DNA from: Camelus ferus
Lineage: Eukaryota
Direction: 5' to 3'
DNA: 64,000 bases
Assembly (NCBI RefSeq): GCF_009834535.1
Contig: NC_045713.1
Coordinates: forward strand, 6,758,001 to 6,822,000
In this document: positions 39,990-60,500 of the stretch, piece after piece
Layout: each line of letters opens with the position of its first letter
How positions within the stretch are numbered: position 1 is the first letter of the stretch
Translations under genes and position numbers: made by a program
The notes under the pieces: model-generated
Databases searched by the model: none
The model's input: the letters and a program-made list of their open reading frames with translations, nothing else
Told to the model about the DNA's origin: nothing

Positions 39990-41199
39990 CCACCTTGTGC
40001 CACCTGTTGTTTACAAGCAGTTTTATGTGTCTTCCTCATCCTCACCTCACCCAGTTATCCCTCCCTTAAGACCTTGGGAAGTGTTGGGCAGAAGGGACCA
40101 GAGAGGATGCAAGTGAGAATGCTGTCCCCACAGGGAAAAAAAGCTGTTCCTGTTACCTAAAGACCTAAGGAAACTGAGGAAATTAGGAGGGCCCTTCTCC
40201 AAAGACCACCATGGGGTGGGAGGCTGGCTCTGTACCTTCTCCTGAGACCAGGGATGGCTACATAATTTGCAAGGCCTGGTACAACATGAAAAATGCAGGG
40301 TTTCTTGTTCAAAAACAAGAACAAAGCTTTTTTCTTTCTTCCACTGTCTCTCAACCTGTCCTGGTGGTTTTTAATTTGTTATTTAAGGGCCAGAACCCTC
40401 AGACAAGGAAATAACCCAGAGGCACTCAGGGTTCTGCCCCTCACCTTGGTACAGATAGCACATGTGTCCAACCCGGACCCAGATCCAGACCCGGATCCTC
40501 CCTGTGTCTGCGCCCAGGTCCCTGCTGGGGAAGGAGGATGGCAGCTGTGGTTGGGTAGGGGCAGGGAGCTGACAGGTGAGAACCCATCCAGGTGAGGCAG
40601 GACCCCCAGCACATGCTCCAATGTCTCATCAGACTATACTGCCAAAACATAAGTATGAAGGTAAAATCATTAAAAATTTCAAGACAGAGGCTGCAGAGTA
40701 TTAACTCTCAAGCACAAGGCCCCCTACTTTGGTTACACAGTCATTAGATTGACCCAGCCAGGAACCTCTCTCGCCCACAGGGACCCTTTGGCCAGTCTTT
40801 GCCCAGTGAGGTGGAAGCTGCAGGAAAGCAGGGAATTACAGGTGCTGCTGGTACTGCTTTCCTTTTAATCATAGTCTCAGGAGGCTGCAGCCCTGGTTCT
40901 CACTTCCTGGCAGCTGCATAAATCCTAGGGTTCCTCAGTCCTCTCGTACGGTGTGACAGGTCCTAGCCCGCTCCTCAGGATGCTGGGAAGAGAAGGTTTC
41001 TTAGTTATGGATGCTGCTGCATTCCAGGATGAAACTGCCCCCTCCTTACCCCTTTGAGTCTGACTTGGTGGGTTCTCAGGAGCCTGGACTGAGGGTCAGA
41101 AGCCTCCTTGGCTCTTTGTTTCTCTGATACGCTGTCCAGCACAAATTCTCTGAAGTCATTTCTCAACCCTTCTCCACCTTGTCCATTTGCTCCCTGTAG

Positions 41200-48228: not shown

Positions 48229-51200
48229 TTAGGCCTGGGACCCAGCAGCCTGAACAGGCTGGGATGCGCACCTCCTCTTGCTGAGGTTGGTGAGGATCTG
48301 GTCCTGGTTGGGCCGGTAGGGAACCACGAAGTTCTCTGGAGGAAGGATGAGACCTCTGTTCTCTTCCACCTGGCTCATCAGCAGGTAACTGGCTCCTGGG
48401 GAGGGGGAGGGAGGGATTGAGAGCTCATGTTATTGAGACCTTGTAGATGAACCTCCTCACCCTAGTCCCTCAGATTCTACCTCTATCGTGTTCATGAGGC
48501 TAAGTCCCCCTCTCCATTTCCCCACATCTCCATTTCCCCACATCTCCATTACCTTTCTTCATGTGGGGGCAGTGCTTGCAGGGCACGTAAAACTTTAAGG
48601 AGGTGTCAGTGGGTGGAGATGGCAGATCCAGGCCTCCGGTTTTGTAAACACCAATGAGACTGACAGTCACCATGAGGCCCTCCCCTGGGCCCCGAACCAT
48701 GGACTTCACTGTTGCGGTCACCACTGTGAGAGAGTTGAGGTGAGAGGTGAGGAGACAGGAGGCCAGGGCAGGGCTGGAACTAGAAAGAAGGGGGACTTTG
48801 GGGACAGGAGGGGAGATTAGGGGAGCTGAAAGGGCAGAGCTGGGGATGAAGCTTCTTACCCAGGTTGCTGTTACAGAAGTTGCTCTGCAAGGTGCCTTTC
48901 CGCCGGCACTGCTTTGGGCAGGGGACACTGGCTGCACCTGGTAGGGGATGGGGGCACTGTTTGTGGAGGGTAACCTACCCAGCAGGTAGGAAGGACCACT
49001 TTCCCCACCAAAGCCTCATTGCTTTGACCATGTTCAGGGCCCTATCCAGCTTTGGGTCCCAGCACCCAGTACCAGCCCTTAGCACAGAGGCGACACTAGT
49101 GAGTGTTGTATGAACAAATGAATGAGCGCAGGAAGGACCGCTGATACAGCTCCCTTCAGTCTGAGTCCACTTCCTCTCCCTTCCCAGACTCACCGGGGCC
49201 CACCGGAGCTGCCTCTGCCTTAGGTAGGGCCTTCAGTTTTTCCTCAGGTAGGGGTTCAGGCTTGACTTTGGTCCCGGCTCCAGGCTTGGGGCCTGGGCTG
49301 AGGAGCGGGGGACTCGACCGGGAGTCCTCCCCTGGGCTCCGGGCCGGCCCTTCTTCAGTGGCGCCCCGCGGCAGAGTCCTGTAGGAGGCTGAGAAGCCGT
49401 CGGCCGTGACGCTGAGGTCCGAGACGAACTGGACAAGGAGCTCGTTCCCTTCAGAGGAGATGGGACTGCGGGCGGCGGGGCAATAGGGTGTGGCGGTGCG
49501 AGGGCGTCAGGCGGGCAGCGCATCCTGCCCCCTACCCGGGCCGGTGGCCTTTTAACCTCTGCCCATCGGTGGCTGCATTAGCTTTCCGATTTCGCCAGCC
49601 CCACTCGCCTCTTGATCTGCGGACTCCAGGCTTGGCCCCAAACCCGGCTGCCTGTCAGGCGGTCTACCTGCTCCGCCCACCCACCTGGGCGCATCCCGCG
49701 TCTTAAGCTAAGCCCCGCCCCTCCCACCAGCAGAGCGCGGTCCCCGACTCCCGCACCTGAGGCGGTGGAGACGCCCACATTCCATCGCCCACCCGGGTCC
49801 GGCCCCCTCACCCCGGGGCGGTGTCGCCGCAGAACTTCCCCAGCCGCTTGGCGTCGTCGCTCACAGCTCCGTTGAACACGCTGACTGAGTCATAGCGGCA
49901 GTAGGAATCAGGTTCCAGGTCAAACTTACCGAAGGTCAGTGAGATCACCTAGCGGCAGGGAACAGGCAGAGGCTGCGCGGCGGGATTCCGGGGCGGCCGA
50001 GGGCGAGGAGCCCCCACCTCTCACCTCCTTCACCTCGCCGCTGCCTCCGGGACGCTCGCAGCGGCCCCCTCTCTCACCTTCCGCATCCCCTCGAACCCCC
50101 TCTCTTAATGCATTCAAAACACGGCTCGGAGAAACACACCCGTGGGAACCCTGCAGTGGCGTCCGTCGCCGTAGTCCGCAAGGTCAAGTCCACTTCCACC
50201 ACCACCACATACACGTACGCAGAAATCAGTTTATATCAACATCAGGTACCTCGCTTTCGTAAGGCTCGTCAGTTGCAATTTTACATTTTTTGTTTGGATG
50301 CAAGCAGGTCTGGGTCTGTTTTTGCTCCCCACCAAGGCAAGCTCAGTGCTTGGGACATAGTAGATGTTCAACAAATCTTTGCTGGCTGCATGCTGGAGGA
50401 CACCGCCTGGGTCCCCGAGGGCGGCTCGGNNNNNNNNNNNNNNNNNNNNNNNNNNNNNNNNNNNNNNNNNNNNNNNNNNNNNNNNNNNNNNNNNNNNNNN
50501 NNNNNNNNNNNNNNNNNNNNNNNNNNNNNNNNNNNNNNNNNNNNNNNNNNNNNNNNNNNNNNNNNNNNNNNNNNNNNNNNNNNNNNNNNNNNNNNNNNNN
50601 NGCGGTGGAGACCCTCCGTCAGCTGGAGGAGAGCTCTAGGCTGGGAGCCCGTGCAGAAAGCTCAGATGTCTGGGTCTCAGGATGAGGGGGCGAGAAGAGG
50701 AGGAGGGAGGACGGGGGTAGGTTAGCAGAGAAGGGGCTCGGAGGAGCGGGGCTCAGGGAGGTCTTGGACCGCGGAGGGTATATCTCGGACTACCGGGCGC
50801 CCTGGCGGGCGGTGGAAGGGGGAAGAGGAATTGACTGGACACGCTCCCTTCTTGCCCCTCCCCCTGACCCGAGGTCACATCACTCCTCTTCCCCTGGGAG
50901 ATCCCATCTCCCCAGTCCGGCAGAGAAGTCTCCATCGTGGCTGGAGAGTCCCCATGTTGTGAGGGTGCCCTCAAATTGGGGCACAGCCCGGGAGGCTCCT
51001 TTGGGGAGGTCCCTGCCTTAAACATTTTAGGGGAGACTTCTGCCGCCAGGAGGGGGTTGATGGGACCGCAATCGGGAGCCCTGGGCTGGGTGTAGGAGGT
51101 TCCGGGTCGGGGGAATCTAGTCCCCCGGTCCGGGGGTGCCCCCTTGCGCCCGTCTGAGGGAGCCCGATTGCGGACGGGGGCGGGCAGTTACTCACCGTCC

Positions 51201-53230
51201 CAGTAACCCCAGGCCGCCCATTCCACCCGCGGGTCCGTGACCCATTTCCGCCTCGCGCCTGGGGGGGGGCCTGGAAGAGGGGTGGGTGGGAGCGGGAGGT
51301 GGGGAGAGAAGACGGGGAGGAGGGACTGAAGGGGCAGTTAGTGAGGAAAAAGGGTTAAGGGAGATAATGGGGGCCCCAGGCTCTTGGGGTGGAGGTTAAG
51401 GCTGGGGGGGGGGCCTGCGCCAGGGGCGGGCTAGGAGAAGGAGAAGGCGGAGGTGAGGGAGGTCTCACCAGTGCCTGAGGTGGCCCGCCCGCTGTACCAG
51501 AGCAGGAAGCCTCGTCCTCCCGTGCCCTCGTCGGATGTCATCCTCAGGGTCACCTGGTTGCCAGGGGCGACTAAGGGCGCTGGCCGGAAGGTCCCACAGA
51601 AGCGTCCAAGCCGCTGGCCCGAGGTTCCAGTCCCAGTAAAGACCTCCAGAGCATCGTAACGGCAGGAGGGGTGCAGCTCCAGGTCAAAGACTCGGAAGGA
51701 GAGAGTCACAGTCTGGCTCTCAGGGACCTGATGGCGGGACAGGGGTGGGGACCTGCAAAGTCAGGCCAAACACAACCAGGTGGAGGGCACCTCCCTTTCC
51801 CCAAGCATTTCCTACAGAAACTGGGCCTGAGCGGGCGGGGGCTTTGTCAGGGTGCAGAGCAAAGGGCTTGTGGCTTGCGCAGGGGACAAGACCTGAGGTC
51901 TGTGGAGAGACTAAAGTGGGTGGGCACAAAGTTGGGAAAGGAAAAGCAGGCTCTGAGTTAAGGTGTGAGGACACCTGCCACGTGTTATTGTGAGCACTGA
52001 TGCCATCAGTGACCAGAGGGGAGGGGCTTGGACTTCCCCAGGGAGAAGCTGTGGTGCTTCGGGGTGGGCAGGGGGCCCACCCTTTGGCTACCTGGACCCA
52101 GGCCTTGGAGACTTTGACAAGGGGGTAGTGGCCAGAGGGGCCTTCTCACCGTTACTGTCCAGATGCACTCCTTATTGGGGGGGTAGTGGTTAGGGAAACC
52201 CTCACTTGCCAGGTAGCCGGACTCCCCAGTCACAGACCCTCCGCACAGGAACACAGGTCTGGACAACAGAAGAGACACCAGCCATGAGTAGGGGAGTAGC
52301 GGGGAAACTGGGATAGGGTAAAGAGGATGGGGAGGCCAAGGAGGGAAACCAGGGGGATGAGGGAGAAAGGCCCAAGGGATCTGGGGTACCCTTAATCAGC
52401 CAGGACAGGACTGGGGTGGGAAACACTCCAGTAGAGGGTCAAGAAAAAGTGGGGCCAGCAACTTGGCTGTCCTTCCAGCCCCTTGGAGGCCCCACCCCCA
52501 TCCCAACAGGAATTCCCGGAATCCTCCTCAGCCCCCCTTCCTCATTCTCCCCCCTCGCCCTGCCTGGCAGTCAGAGACAGGAGCCGCCTAACTAATTCCA
52601 GATGTGGACACAGCCACGAGGCGGTTGGGAGGGGTGGGGGCGGGGAGATGAGAGAGAAACAGCGGCTTGGGCCCTTAGATTGAACCTGGAGACTGGGTTC
52701 CCTGAGCTCCCAACCTTTGCCCTGATCCAGTTACAGCTAACTACTTGAGTGCCTGACTCCCTAGTCTCCCCCCTCCCCCCCTCCCCAATCTCTCTAATTC
52801 CCTCCTAGAATCCAGATGTCCAGCTACCAGGCAAGTTCAAAGTCTTGGTGCTCTCAGGTTCCAGGCAGGGCCAAGGGTCTGAGTAGAGGGGGAGACTTAG
52901 AGGGCAGAGGACGGACTGTGGAGGAGTGAGGAGCAGTGGTGACCTGCAGGAGACAGTGATCTTGCAGCAGAGAGGGAGGACTTGGGGACCAGAGGAGGGT
53001 AGGGGCTCTGGGCGATCTGGAGGGGAGATGTTAGCAAAAGAATCCACAAAATCCATAGGCACAACACACCCCCCCACCGCCTTTTCCCAAGGAATCAGGG
53101 ACTTCAAGCTATCTGGAAGGTGCCAAGAGACCTACCTGGTGTAGTTGGGGGTCTGGCCCTGGGCGAAAGGCAGCAGAACCCAGGCAGTGAGGAGGGGCCC
53201 CAGGAGGGAGGCTGTGGCAGCAGGCAGCAT
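48229..53230 (-). CDS. PCOLCE: Procollagen C-endopeptidase enhancer 1 (signal peptide, CUB1, CUB2, NTR), ~470 aa
   Basis: Exons 53136-53230, 52150-52258, 51469-51727, [exon 4 inferred inside N-block 50430-50601], 49812-49948, 49194-49465, 48860-48937, 48553-48723, 48229-48395 (TAA). [14 protein letters not shown]...; CUB motifs CRYDALEVF and CRYDSVSVF; NTR CPKQCRR...SNFC. Confidence 0.96.
49300..51700. other. PCOLCE: Intragenic CpG-rich region in PCOLCE (exons 3-6)
   Basis: CpG density stays high through introns 3-5, away from the gene's TSS. Confidence 0.65.
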
Positions 53231-54548: not shown

Positions 54549-57500
54549 TCAGCTTTCAGGGGTTGGGGGGCCTTGGCCAACCCCTCCAGCAGCCCTCTGC
54601 AGCATGTCCAGGGCCTCCCAGAAGAAATCTTTCTGCGCAGCCATCAAGGGCATCCAGCCTACGATCTCTTTCATCTTTTCCATGCGGTCCTGCAACGTGG
54701 GGCAACTGTGGATCTGGCTGAGGTACTCCTCACAGGCCCGGGCTGCCCCTCCGGGGTCCTCAGGCACTCCGGCCCCCAGGCTGGGCTCGGGGGTCCCCAC
54801 CACCCTGCTGGCTGGGAGGTCCCTGTAGGCGGGATGGTGCTCGATGTCATGGCTGGACAGCATGTAGAGGCACTCTCGGGTCGAGCAGAGAGAGCAGGCA
54901 CACAGAGGGACCTTGGAGGACAGACGCGGCGTGGCTGAGTGGGGCCTTAGTGAGGGGTTCCCAGGAAGCCCCAGCTGTTGTGTTCCTCCCACTCAGACCA
55001 GCCCTGAGCCAGCAAGTGAGCTGGCTGGCTGAGCCCCAAGGTTGTGCGAGGTCAGAGAGGACCAGCAAGGTCAGCTAAGGGAGAGCCAAGTGCCATGGTA
55101 CGTGGCAGGACTGGGAGGTGGGTGGTGCTGGGGAAGCGGGCCCTGCGGGAGTCCCAGCTACAGTCCTAGGGGCCACCTGGCTCTGTGGCCCCGGCCCTCC
55201 CTGGTTGCTGGCTCTGCTCTGACCTTGACATGGAGCTTGACGAAGGAGGCGCTCCCCTTAGGCCAGCCAGGGAGGCGGCCTCCGGCCCCACAGCCACAGC
55301 CCAACAGCTCCTTGCTGAAGTCCGAGCCCTGGCTTAGCACCAGGGAGTGGTTGAGGCCACACCACAGGGCGATGGGGCGTTGCAGATAATGTACCTGAGG
55401 ACACAGGGCCGGGGTCCCTGAGCAGGGAAAGCCAAGGGACTGGGGGGCCCAGGTTGGAGATGGGTGACAGAAAGGCTCAGGGCAGCATCTCAGGAAACTA
55501 GGGGATGGAAGAGATGGACCCAGAATACTTCCCCCTCCCCTAAGAGATCTGACTGCAGACTGGCAGCCATCTCCCCTTCCTTTGTTCCCTGGCAGCCCTA
55601 GACTGAGCACAAGAGCTCTAGCATGTCTGTGGGTTCCTCCTCCTGGCTCCCTGGAACACAGGCTTCTTGCCTGAGTCCAGGGCCCACTATCTGCTCCCTC
55701 ATCTGGGCCCCCGCAGGCCTGGGCCAGTCCATCCTCTCATCCTGCCTTCCAGCCTCGAGGGAGGAAGAGCCTTCCTCTTGCTCGCTGTGCAATTCCAGGT
55801 CAGGGCCCAGGAAGGATCTGCCTTCCCCTTATTCCTTCCTTCCCTCTCTAGTATTTTCAACTTGTCTTATCTTTCCAAATGGCCACCCTGTTTTGGAAAA
55901 ACATTACCATCTGATTCCTGCTGCTTCCTACCTGTATTTTAGGCAGCAGGACTGGCTATGCGATCAGTCTGAGGTGGACCACGTTCTTGTTCTCACCACA
56001 GCCAGCCTCTCCTGAACCTTCTGTGATTTGGCTTCTCTCCCTGCTACACTATGATGTGTTCTCTCCAAAGGCACTTGACCTCCCAGCTGCCAAGTCCCAG
56101 GGCCTCCCCTGTACACTTTCTCCTGAGACTGTGAGCGCTTTAATTCAGAAGACATACATAAGTAATTGATGGTCTTTATAGAAATAAAGTTATAAACTAT
56201 TGGCAAGCAAAAATTAATTTAAACAATCACTGGAAATCCCACCACCCACTATTGCTGTCTGGCTGGATATTCTTCCTCACTGTTGCCTGTATAACCATAC
56301 ACACGAAAGTTGTCTATTTTTAAACAAAAATGGACTGTGTTCTGTAAACCATGTCATGATTTTTTTTTCACTTAAAAATATGGCCTGACCATCTTTCCAT
56401 GTCAGTGAGTATATTCCTACAGTGAGTATATTCATCACTGTCACCATTAACCACCCCCTCCTTTTTGAAACTTTCTGTGCTCATGGCTTTGGGGATGTGG
56501 CATTTGAGGGCGTGTCTCTGTCTCAGAGACAATTCTGTCAGTCCCTCTGCCTACAATGGCGGCTGCCACCCAGGTTTGCTCCTCTATCTCTGCTTTTGTG
56601 GTTTCAACCTCGTTCAACATGGAATCCAGCTAGACATTTCTACTTTAGTGTTTTACTCTCACTGCAAAAAAAAAGTCCAAATTCACATTATTTTCTCAAA
56701 CCAGCATTCCTTTCCAACTCACAGGTGTACTGGTGATACCATCTATTGTCACAGCCACCTATGTCCTAGGTCACTAGGTCCTAGTTTCCAGAACCTGTTC
56801 ATTTTCTTTCAAAACACCTCACAAATCCATTCCTTTCTGTCCTCACTGCTGCTGTACCAGCCACAGGTCCTTGTCTCAGGTGCTCGAGTCACTCAGCAGC
56901 CTCGCTGGGCCTCTCACTGGTGGCCTCCTGTGCCCCCTGGCCGGGTGATCTATTCTCAGTCATCTGGGGGTTGCCTTCTCCTGCTCCAGAACTTGCCATG
57001 ACTCTTTTCCAAATCTGTACGTCTATAGATTCACAGCCACCTATATCGCCTCATATTTACCAGTTTCCAAAACACACTCTGCTCTAGTCAAGCCGGTCTT
57101 TCCACTGTCTCAGGGATGTGCAAGCTTCCTCCCCATCTCCATTACACAGGATGCCTTTCCTGGTACCCACCTGAATCCTATCTAACCCACTGGGCCCTGC
57201 TCGCATCTCACCTCTTCTAGTTACTTTGCTCCCTGCCCACCTCCCTACTCCACTCAGTTCCTACTGCACTTACAGCTCCCACCTCGTGGGGCCCACCCTG
57301 GGTGAGGCATGCCACAGTAGCACAGGCATTACGTACTGGTTGGCTTAACTTCCTGGGGAGTTGGAAGTGGATTCTATGGAAACTAGAGAAGTGAAGAGAT
57401 CCAGGGGTTAGGGAATTAGAGGAAGGAAGGGGCTCAGGATGAGAGTGGCTGGGAAGCAGTCTCACCTGTGTGGGTTCCCCTCGGTCCATTTTGTCCCCTG

Positions 57501-60500
57501 TTCCCAGCTGCCCATATCTGTTATTTCCCTGCATAAAGATTCGGCCAAATTCATCCACCAGGCCAAGGTGATTGTAGCCAAGAGCACAGAATAGGATCTA
57601 GGAGGTAAGGTTGAAAAGGGAGATGAGCATCCAGTTGTCTCCAGAAGAACTCAGAGCTCCAGACTCTCCCAACTGCGAACCTACCATCGCCAGCTGATCA
57701 CTTTCGGTCTTGCCCACTAGGTCACCCCTCTCCCTGGGTCCCCTGACCCTCCCTGATCAATTATTTGATTCCTGATCATATTTCAGAGTTTCAGTACCTT
57801 GCAGTCTCAAAGGCCCCACCCCCTCTGGTCTGCCCTGCCNNNNNNNNNNNNNNNNNNNNNNNNNNNNNNNNNNNNNNNNNNNNNNNNNNNNNNNNNNNNN
57901 NNNNNNNNNNNNNNNNNNNNNNNNNNNNNNNNNNNNNNNNNNNNNNNNNNNNNNNNNNNNNNNNNNNNNNNNNNNNNNNNNNNNNNNNNNNNNNNTCAGC
58001 TCAGCAGCTTTGGGCACCCATTTCCTAGGGGTAAGGCCCTACCTGGGACAAAAGATGCAAGGTCTGGGGAGCCTCACACCCACTATGCACCAGATATGAC
58101 GTCTGGGCACCTAAACACACCTCTTTACTAGGATGCCCTATGGGTCCACCACAGAGCTGGACCAAGGATAAGGAGGGGTGTCTGTATCTGGAAGGTCTGT
58201 CCACAGTTGGGATCTGTGGAAGAAGGGAGGTGGTTCTTACCCGTGATGTACAGAGTACTGCTCTGGTTGGAAGCCATGCAGGCCACACGCAGGTGAGGGA
58301 GGCAACGGGACACCTTCCTCAGGGCCAGCTGAACTGTGTAGGAGCGTGGCTGATCCAGCTGGGTTTCATTCACTACCAAAGAGTAGATCTTTCCTTCCTC
58401 TGGGGGAGGGGGCAGGGAGGTAGACAATTGTGCGGGTGAGGGGACCCTCCAACATCTGCATTAACTTCCCAAGAAACTCCCTAAGACATAACAGGACAAA
58501 ACATTCACTGGCCCAGAGTAGGGTTGGAAGAAAAAGGGTAGAGGTGAAAAAGGGAAGTTCCCTTGACTCCATCCCTTACTACCAAAACTAAATCAGGGAA
58601 GTTCTTCAGTGTGAGAGATGAGTAGAGAGAAAGCCGAGCAGTTGGATGTGACGGAATCCAATTTGAGTGCTGGGAAGGGTGATGTCTAGGGATTTAGGGT
58701 CCTGCCTAGCATTAAGAAATCTGGAAGGTCTCAGGCTTGGGCATGTGGTCGTCGAGTACAGGGAACACAGAAAGTAGGGGACAGTTTGGGGTATAAAGTG
58801 CCTGGCACGAAGGTTGGGGAGATCAGAATTTAAAATATCAGGTGTTCACTAGAACAATGGTTTCCAAACGATTTTTTGTAGCAGGACTTCTGAAACATTA
58901 TGTGGAATCCTAGGCTAGGAGACAGACAAAAGCAGAGCTGTTTGGTTTGAGAGCAGGACAAGGTGGCATGTAGAACCCTTGGTGAGAGGCTTCCCTCCTC
59001 ACCTCCCACAGCAGGTTCTGAAGAATCTGCAGGAAACAGTTTGCAAACCACTGCTCTAAGCCCTACCTGTGAGGAGCAGCAGAGCCCGTTGGGTCTCCTG
59101 ACCGACCAGCACAATCTGCTTGAAGTTCATGGAGTGGTGGAAGGTCATCTTGAAGACCCGCTGCCCACTGGACTGCAGGTAGACCTCCACACAGTCGCAG
59201 GCCCGGCTGCCGGTTGTCCCCGTCACTCCCGGCTGCTCCCGAGTGGCCAACACATAGAGGTATTTCCGGTAAACTGTGTCACATCTTGGGTCTGAGGCAA
59301 ACTGTAGGAGAAGATGAAGGTGTCTGGGACCTAGGGACTTGTAGTGGGATGAGGCTGAGGGAGCTGGACCGTTGGGTAGGGGATGATATACTTGGGTCCA
59401 GGGCTCGGAAATGAGGACTTGGTTTCTGGTTCCTGGTATGGGAGGGCGACTGTCCTGAGGGGGACACCTCAGGACTGCTGTGGGCCCTGGGTTCCCGGAG
59501 GAGAGGTGGGGTCTCAGCTTCCAGGGTCCTGATACTCACATCCTTGGCTCCGCGACACAACACAACATAGCGGCAGGCCCGCTTCCACTGGATCTGGCCA
59601 AGGGTGGAGGAGACCAGGGCATTTTTGAGGAAGAAGAGGGTCCCTGCATAGTCAAGAATGAAGACGTGGTCCTTGGTGGGCAGGAAGCGACGGTAGCCAT
59701 GGGCTAGCAGGGGGGCTACGCTCTTGCTGAGACAGCGGCGGCGGCCCCCAAATGCCTGGAAATACAGGCCCTTTGTGTCTGGAAAAGGGAAAGGAGAGGG
59801 AGGTTTAAGGAGGCGAGAAGGTGCAGGCAGATGAATCAGAACTTGGGCCAACTGGAGTTCTCAGATCCCATGGGCTTTAGCTCCTCTCCTTCCCCAAGCC
59901 TGGGGAACAGACCCCTTCCAAGGGGCATTTGGGAAGCTTAGACAATACCCAAAATTATACCCCATGCCTGAACTTCAGTTGTTTGCCCCACCTCAGGCCA
60001 GGGCCATACACATGCTTCTAAGTGGGCACTTCTCTGGTCCAAACTTGCATAAGAGACATCAAAGGAAATATCAGAATTCACAAAAAAGCAGAAGGAGGAG
60101 TGAAAAGGAATGAAGGGAAAGGCCAGGAACCCTTCCTCACCCCTTGCTCTGGACCTGCTATCTGGATCTCAATCTCTGATGTGTGAGGTAAAGTTATTGG
60201 ACAGGTGCTCCCTGGGAAGGGAGGGAGTTAGAGCATGTTTCTCAACCTGGAGGTGATTTTTGTCCCTCAGGGAACATGTCACAAATGGAGAAGGTGCTAG
60301 TGGCCTCTAGTGGGTAGAGGCCAGGGATGTTGCTAAACATTCTACAATGCAAAGGACAGCCCCTCCCTCCAAAGAATTATTTGGCCCAAAGTTTCAACAG
60401 TGACAAGGTTGAAAAATCCTGGTTTAGAAAAGTGAGAACTCCAGGTCTGGAGAGAGGAGGACGTCTCAAGGTAAGATTTGGAAGAGTTTGAATATGGAGG

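Follow-up and report, generated by a model that had tools for sequence, protein, structure and literature searches.

The window analysed here is a stretch of 64,000 nucleotides (nt) of Camelus ferus (assembly GCF_009834535.1, contig NC_045713.1, positions 6,758,001 to 6,822,000 of the forward strand), which carries on its minus strand PCOLCE, the gene of PCPE-1, a secreted glycoprotein (PMC8377038). An earlier reading made from the letters alone (the sequence-only reading) had proposed that intron 3 of this gene harbors an in-frame, Trp-rich cassette exon between the regions encoding the CUB1 and CUB2 domains. The elements behind this proposal were all found on the minus strand of intron 3: a pyrimidine-rich tract ending in ctcttccag (53 nt, approximately 90% pyrimidine), an interval of 75 nt, a donor after ACG, and CACTAAC upstream at the expected place (Table 1). 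The interval is bordered by a C-rich acceptor, cag/G, and the donor GGGACG/gtgagtaa (the slash marks the exon border). When it was translated with the leftover G of exon 3, 25 residues were obtained without a stop and one G was left for exon 4, confirming that the phase-1 frame is kept.

The exon peptides of PCOLCE in the window were 99.5% identical to those of Camelus dromedarius PCOLCE isoform X1, and the other retrieved proteins were far less similar. Between 51195 and exon 5, the first base of which is 49948, no reading frame for the start of CUB2 was found outside the masked run of N; exon 4 presumably sits beneath this run. The gene-body block 49200-51300 (PCOLCE introns 3-5) showed 65-69% G+C in most 300-nt windows and a CpG observed/expected ratio of 0.5-0.86, compared with 0.1-0.3 in the rest of the gene; the block is a candidate for a CpG island inside the gene or for an antisense promoter.

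Table 1 Features around the optional exon of PCOLCE in the window.
Feature	Position	Strand	Remarks
PCOLCE exon 3, second half of CUB1	51469-51727	-	ends in phase 1, ...ATSGT plus one G; donor CACTG/gtgaga
CACTAAC, candidate branch point of the optional exon	51337-51343	-	branch-point role putative
C-rich polypyrimidine tract before the acceptor	51273-51325	-	preceded by the conserved AG 51327-51326
Optional cassette exon (exon 3a)	51196-51270	-	75 nt, phase 1-1; acceptor AG 51272-51271
Donor gtgagtaa	51188-51195	-	GT 51195-51194; stop TAA 51190-51188 if the donor is unused
Predicted RNA hairpin of ~108 nt	51066-51173	-	starts 23 nt past the optional-exon donor
Masked N run, presumably over exon 4 (start of CUB2)	50430-50601		no CUB2-start frame elsewhere

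An approximate weight matrix was used to score the splice sites. The acceptor and the donor of the optional exon reached 9.1 and 10.0 bits, respectively, which equalled or exceeded the scores of most genuine PCOLCE sites in the window. Among AG..GT pairs lying 30-300 nt apart on both strands of the 64-kb window, only 12 reached both scores. Two intervals, 57466-57597 on the minus strand and 40388-40591 on the plus strand, were the only others in which scores at least as high as those of the optional exon coincided with an open frame whose length is a multiple of 3; both probably belong to neighbouring genes as exons.

Two further acceptors had been considered in the sequence-only reading. The AG at 51260-51259, from which a 63-nt version had been suggested, is indeed present in the window; its use is not supported, as echidna and the sauropsids lack this AG and the retrieved isoforms all use the upstream AG at 51272-51271. 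The 63-nt variant was accordingly rejected. The other AG, at 51327-51326, lies 11-12 nt past CACTAAC, is conserved in eutherians and echidna, and would give an out-of-frame version of 130 nt with 51325 as its first base; no catalogued isoform among those retrieved uses it. A poison exon would introduce a frameshift or an in-frame stop on inclusion, and the 75-nt form does neither, being in frame and open; the reading as a poison exon was rejected. Truncation is possible only through the unannotated 130-nt acceptor or through read-through of the donor.

Subsequently, a HMMER search was conducted with the exon 3 peptide against 1.84 billion representative proteins, and the CUB1-CUB2 junction of every retrieved protein was scanned. 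The Weddell seal protein XP_030884477.1, annotated as 'isoform X1' (480 amino acids, aa), carries a 25-residue insertion where CUB1, ending in ...ATSGT, meets CUB2, identical to the 25 residues given by the sequence-only reading; this seal protein then served as query for a wider search. The exact insertion is also found in isoform X1 of C. dromedarius (XP_064334727.1), C. ferus, and Vicugna pacos; X1 and X2 have 495 and 470 aa, respectively, in the two camels, and the alpaca X1 has 495 aa. It is annotated in about 25 other mammals as well, including mouse (XP_006504621.1, which is UniProt D3YUE2). Insertions with at most two substitutions were observed in seals, walrus, jaguar, colugo, warthog, a phyllostomid bat, desman, camels, alpaca, blue and pygmy sperm whales, water buffalo, titi monkey, guinea pig, deer mouse, vole, Apodemus, and mouse, and the wallaby insertion has five. 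Diverged insertions were found in two turtles and a snake (27 residues) and in four birds (26 residues); the catalogued pcolce-a protein of the coelacanth has a plain CUB1-CUB2 junction. The proposal of an in-frame cassette exon between CUB1 and CUB2 was thus substantiated by catalogued isoforms. Its further statement that the canonical 9-exon model lacks the exon is correct, yet the exon is not new, since RefSeq X1 of camels and alpaca, mouse D3YUE2, and many other entries contain it. The optional exon is therefore already catalogued, even in the genus Camelus, without a characterisation in the literature that we found.

Two long models showed differences of another kind. The walrus X1 (520 aa) has the 25-residue insert and about 40 further residues elsewhere, and Leopardus geoffroyi X1 (506 aa) has a plain CUB1-CUB2 junction with its extra length elsewhere. 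These may be other optional segments or mispredictions.

The exon was then compared at the DNA level in nine genomes, namely the window and those of Peromyscus, a canid, echidna, a terrapin (turtle), a sea eagle, warthog, a sand lizard (Lacerta), and alligator; none is human and there is no second camelid. In all nine, intron 3 contains the optional exon with cag/G and G/gtgagta at its borders. Its length is always a multiple of 3: 75 nt in the window, canid, warthog, Peromyscus, and alligator, 78 nt in the eagle, 81 nt in the turtle and the lizard, and 84 nt in echidna. The exon is intact even in the canid, echidna, and Lacerta, whose retrieved catalogue entries are the canonical isoform only. 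Among the six reading frames, that of PCOLCE is the only one free of stops in all nine genomes, and the other five all contain stops in one genome or more. Exon, splice sites, and frame are kept in all five amniote lineages examined (mammals, birds, turtle, crocodilian, and squamates). On these genomes, which cover eutherians, a monotreme, and four sauropsids, the exon is dated to the amniote ancestor at the latest.

In the mammals compared, the optional exon is more conserved than the constitutive exon 3. Nucleotide identity to the window for the optional exon and exon 3 was 98.7% and 93.4% in the canid, 97.3% and 94.5% in warthog, 94.7% and 88.3% in Peromyscus, and 77.4% and 75.4% in echidna, respectively. 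The flanks are conserved as well: in the three eutherians, identity to the window was 73-93% in the 195 nt before the exon and 76-91% in the 200 nt after it, falling in Peromyscus beyond +200 to 54%, the background level (47% for shuffled sequence). CACTAAC is conserved in the alignment of the canid, warthog, and Peromyscus, and the C-rich tract is nearly identical in the four eutherians.

The variable sites at codon positions 1, 2, and 3 numbered 0, 1, and 5 among the four eutherians and 4, 2, and 10 among the five mammals. The ratio of nonsynonymous to synonymous substitution rates (dN/dS, Nei-Gojobori) was 0-0.11 among eutherians, about 0.2-0.3 between these and echidna, and 0.13-0.20 between mammals and the turtle, and the excess of synonymous changes was significant by the binomial test (P=0.004 for the eutherian events and 0.001-0.03 for deeper pairs). 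Purifying selection on the insert peptide is thus supported in mammals, with a signal that is weak or absent in archosaurs. The cross-species comparison with dN/dS that the sequence-only reading had put forward as a check therefore came out in its favour, with splice sites and frame kept in all nine genomes and low ratios within mammals (0-0.24). Conserved splice sites, frame, codon-position bias, and flanks characterise an alternative exon that is regulated and codes for protein. Taken together, these findings make it very likely that the 75-nt interval is a conserved coding alternative exon of PCOLCE.

Several observations weigh against this reading. The RefSeq X1 models are automatic, unreviewed predictions, and full cassette inclusion was seen in predicted models only; the sole cDNA identified, described below, is a truncated read-through form and not the cassette form. 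Among the listed matches, all the full-length PCOLCE products from Logan, an assembly of public runs, are the skipped form. A region-restricted search of a set of 5.8 billion proteins yielded no Logan product with the insert, the matches coming from NCBI, UniRef, and EukProt only, and a search with a 60-residue junction fragment gave no assembly-derived match. The absence of the insert from transcript-assembly proteins is weak evidence; since no assembly-derived product carries it, inclusion would be minor in commonly sequenced tissues. In addition, archosaur comparisons gave dN/dS of 0.5-1.0, and the four sauropsids together showed no codon periodicity. The 3' 39 nt of the optional exon contain no synonymous change in eutherians, suggesting that part of the constraint may act on RNA rather than on protein.

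The cDNA in question is human FLJ55126 (BAG60606.1 / B4DPJ4, 181 aa), in which the end of exon 3 is joined directly to the 25 residues, followed by G-E-stop. The acceptor of the optional exon was therefore used and its donor was read through into gtgagTAA, giving a product that consists of CUB1 and a 27-residue tail with an immediate stop. The same ending, ...WGYWDGE-stop, is present in the pig model A0A8D1RY96 and the platypus model A0A6I8PBN7, and read-through past the donor in the window also gives G-E-stop. Each of the five mammals compared retains the stop that directly follows the donor (gtgagTAA or TAG), and in sauropsids the read-through product has no immediate stop (GEY...). No polyadenylation signal was found in the window within 594 nt after the donor of the optional exon; the read-through forms are therefore retained-intron forms. 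Separately, Logan contigs of 1-8 kb from several mammals encode products running from exon 3 straight into intron 3 (...ATSGT-GE...), and these contigs derive from PCOLCE RNA that was not spliced or from genomic reads of the gene.

These read-through products raise the question of whether the element is a regulatory switch, in which use of the acceptor without the donor would retain the downstream intron and lead to a stop two codons later, so that a CUB1-only protein or an unstable mRNA would lower the output of PCPE-1. The three products with the shared ending and the retained stop in mammals fit this explanation, as do the lack of a nearby polyadenylation signal, which points to intron retention, nucleotide conservation beyond coding needs, including the absence of synonymous change in the 3' 39 nt, and a conserved hairpin downstream. 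Moreover, a CUB1-only protein could not enhance cleavage, as both CUB domains are required (PMC3234718). However, protein constraint and strict frame-keeping reach the sauropsids, where read-through meets no immediate stop, and a pure RNA switch would require neither the in-frame indels of 3, 6, and 9 nt nor the third-position bias; the cDNA with its retained intron may itself be an unfinished transcript. We regard a switch as rather improbable in place of a coding exon, noting that the two can coexist. Another explanation would be a chance pseudo-exon in a GC-rich intron, called by gene predictors and spread between annotations by protein alignment. By our estimate about half of 25-codon windows are stop-free at such composition, the supporting proteins are mostly automatic predictions, and the transcript assemblies lack the insert. 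Against this stand the intact exon in the three genomes whose entries are canonical only, the splice sites that are invariant in nine of nine genomes, the lengths in multiples of 3, the sole frame open in all nine, the conservation above that of exon 3 in mammals, the synonymous excess, and the human cDNA that uses the acceptor. Such an origin is hardly credible.

A function on the other strand (for instance an antisense transcript or exon) or at the DNA level (a promoter or CpG island within the gene) would make the PCOLCE frame incidental. In its favour are the CpG richness of the block 49200-51300, an antisense frame without stops in eight of the nine genomes, and an antisense long non-coding RNA that overlaps PCOLCE in human. 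However, that antisense frame contains two stops in alligator and the other two contain stops in mammals, the conservation peak coincides exactly with the interval bounded by sense-strand splice signals, the variable sites follow the sense codon phase, and no Rfam match was obtained on either strand. This explanation is very unlikely, and antisense coding in particular was rejected, as every antisense frame is interrupted in at least one of the nine genomes.

For the coding alternative exon, the strong splice sites together with predominant skipping suggest that the exon is probably actively repressed. Repression would act through the conserved flanking intron, that is, CACTAAC, the upstream C/CU-rich tract, and approximately 200 nt downstream including the hairpin, with inclusion restricted to certain cells or states. 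The predicted hairpin has a basal stem of 11 bp, in which CCGCAAUCGGG is paired with CCCGAUUGCGG; this stem is invariant in the camelid, canid, warthog, and Peromyscus, and only two pairs of the hairpin covary among the four sequences. A search of Rfam with both strands of 50610-51480 found no family and gave sub-threshold microRNA-like matches only (E about 0.5), which reflect the hairpin. Folding of the optional exon with its flanks was not exceptional for its composition (z = -1.15). The hairpin is thus a lead rather than a finding, and its part in splicing control is putative. On inclusion, exon 3 (phase 1) would be joined to 51270 and 51196 to exon 4 with the frame kept; the protein would gain 25 residues in the flexible tether between CUB1 and CUB2, and the insert might add a new interaction or modification site.

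The native CUB1-CUB2 linker comprises 7 residues (human residues 151-157) and is flexible; crystallography of CUB1CUB2 bound to the procollagen III C-propeptide trimer shows it to be disordered (PMC6372009; PMC6829435). Both CUB domains are needed for activity and must bind cooperatively while tethered (PMC3234718). AlphaFold2 was run on mouse X1 with an alignment of 56 sequences. CUB1, CUB2, and NTR were modelled with confidence, and residues 151-177, the insert, had a predicted local distance difference test score (pLDDT) below 50 and no secondary structure. The disordered tether is thus predicted to be stretched by inclusion from about 7 to about 32 residues. Kronenberg and colleagues reportedly lengthened the CUB1-CUB2 linker artificially in 2009 with no harm to enhancer activity or substrate binding. 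If this is right, the tolerance of the linker to lengthening argues against simple attenuation, and clamping of the procollagen C-propeptide probably persists in the long isoform, by analogy with the engineered protein.

The insert has a Pro-rich start (a PPP run), a basic RRK cluster, and a W-x-x-W-x-x-W run, with four Trp in total. The conserved pattern is a basic cluster (ARRK; in sauropsids RGRPK, GRRR, RRRR, or KGRRK), followed by aromatic residues ending in W-x-Y-W/F-D. A basic and aromatic cluster of this composition could bind glycosaminoglycans or another partner. PCOLCE exon 1 encodes a hydrophobic, signal-like N-terminus, and the mammalian WAAWGYW forms two overlapping W-x-x-W sequons (WAAW and WGYW) in a protein that enters the endoplasmic reticulum (ER). 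On nascent, unfolded chains in the ER, C-mannosylation takes place at the first Trp of W-x-x-W/C (PMC8433626, PMC10154233). The sequons of the insert would fit such a modification, with the reservation that birds have WHYF instead of WxxW; PCOLCE is not mentioned in a paper on the C-mannosylome of induced pluripotent stem cells. A feature search of the ESM Atlas with the insert returned generic CUB clusters only, with scores below the lead threshold of 0.9.

Functional proposals for the insert-bearing isoform are far less certain than the exon itself, and we put them forward as tentative. It is possible, though less likely than not, that the exon encodes an overlooked second form of PCPE-1 of at least amniote age, in which a disordered, basic, Trp-rich, and possibly C-mannosylated module in the CUB1-CUB2 tether would direct the enhancer to a different partner in the matrix or at the cell surface, or would change its selectivity among procollagens and BMP-1/tolloid proteinases, in particular tissues, with inclusion controlled by the flanking intron and the hairpin. 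Literature searches on splice variants of PCPE-1, on a cassette exon of Pcolce, and on D3YUE2 brought up no account of the optional exon. In a detailed review of PCPE-1, neither 'exon' nor 'alternative' occurs, and 'splice variant' is used solely of BMP-1/mTLD (PMC8377038). Two screens of differential exon usage or splicing list Pcolce, and the optional exon is not named in their accessible text. Beyond the catalogues, the present analysis adds the comparative proof of a coding exon in all the amniote lineages examined, the truncated read-through form, the predicted disorder of the insert, and the interpretation of its WxxW and basic-cluster composition.

PCPE-1 is a studied fibrosis biomarker and drug target, and it acts by clamping the procollagen C-propeptide between CUB1 and CUB2, which a short and flexible tether connects. 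A ready-made experiment is offered by a natural isoform in which this tether would be quadrupled and whose sequence hardly changes between camel and mouse and can still be recognised in turtles, birds, and lizards. Comparison of X1 with the canonical protein could show whether the length or the composition of the tether tunes enhancer activity, localisation, and choice of partner.

Among known systems, RefSeq PCOLCE isoform X1 (camel XP_064334727.1; mouse D3YUE2) has the same exon, the same 25 residues, and the same junction, with no sequence difference. The canonical PCPE-1 shares CUB1, CUB2, and NTR with X1 and its linker is already disordered; it differs in the length of that linker (about 7 residues versus about 32 in X1) and in lacking the four Trp, the RRK cluster, and the PPP run. 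W-x-x-W/C sequons like those in WAAWGYW are shared with thrombospondin type-1 repeats and cytokine receptors. A thrombospondin type-1 repeat, however, has approximately 60 residues, six conserved Cys, and a Trp-Arg ladder, whereas the insert is only 25 residues long, has no Cys, and, with the low pLDDT given above, has no predicted fold; its assignment to this family was rejected. The engineered long-linker PCPE-1 reportedly carries its extra residues at the same position as X1. That insert is artificial, whereas the insert of X1 is natural, highly conserved, and of distinctive composition, suggesting a specific role beyond length.

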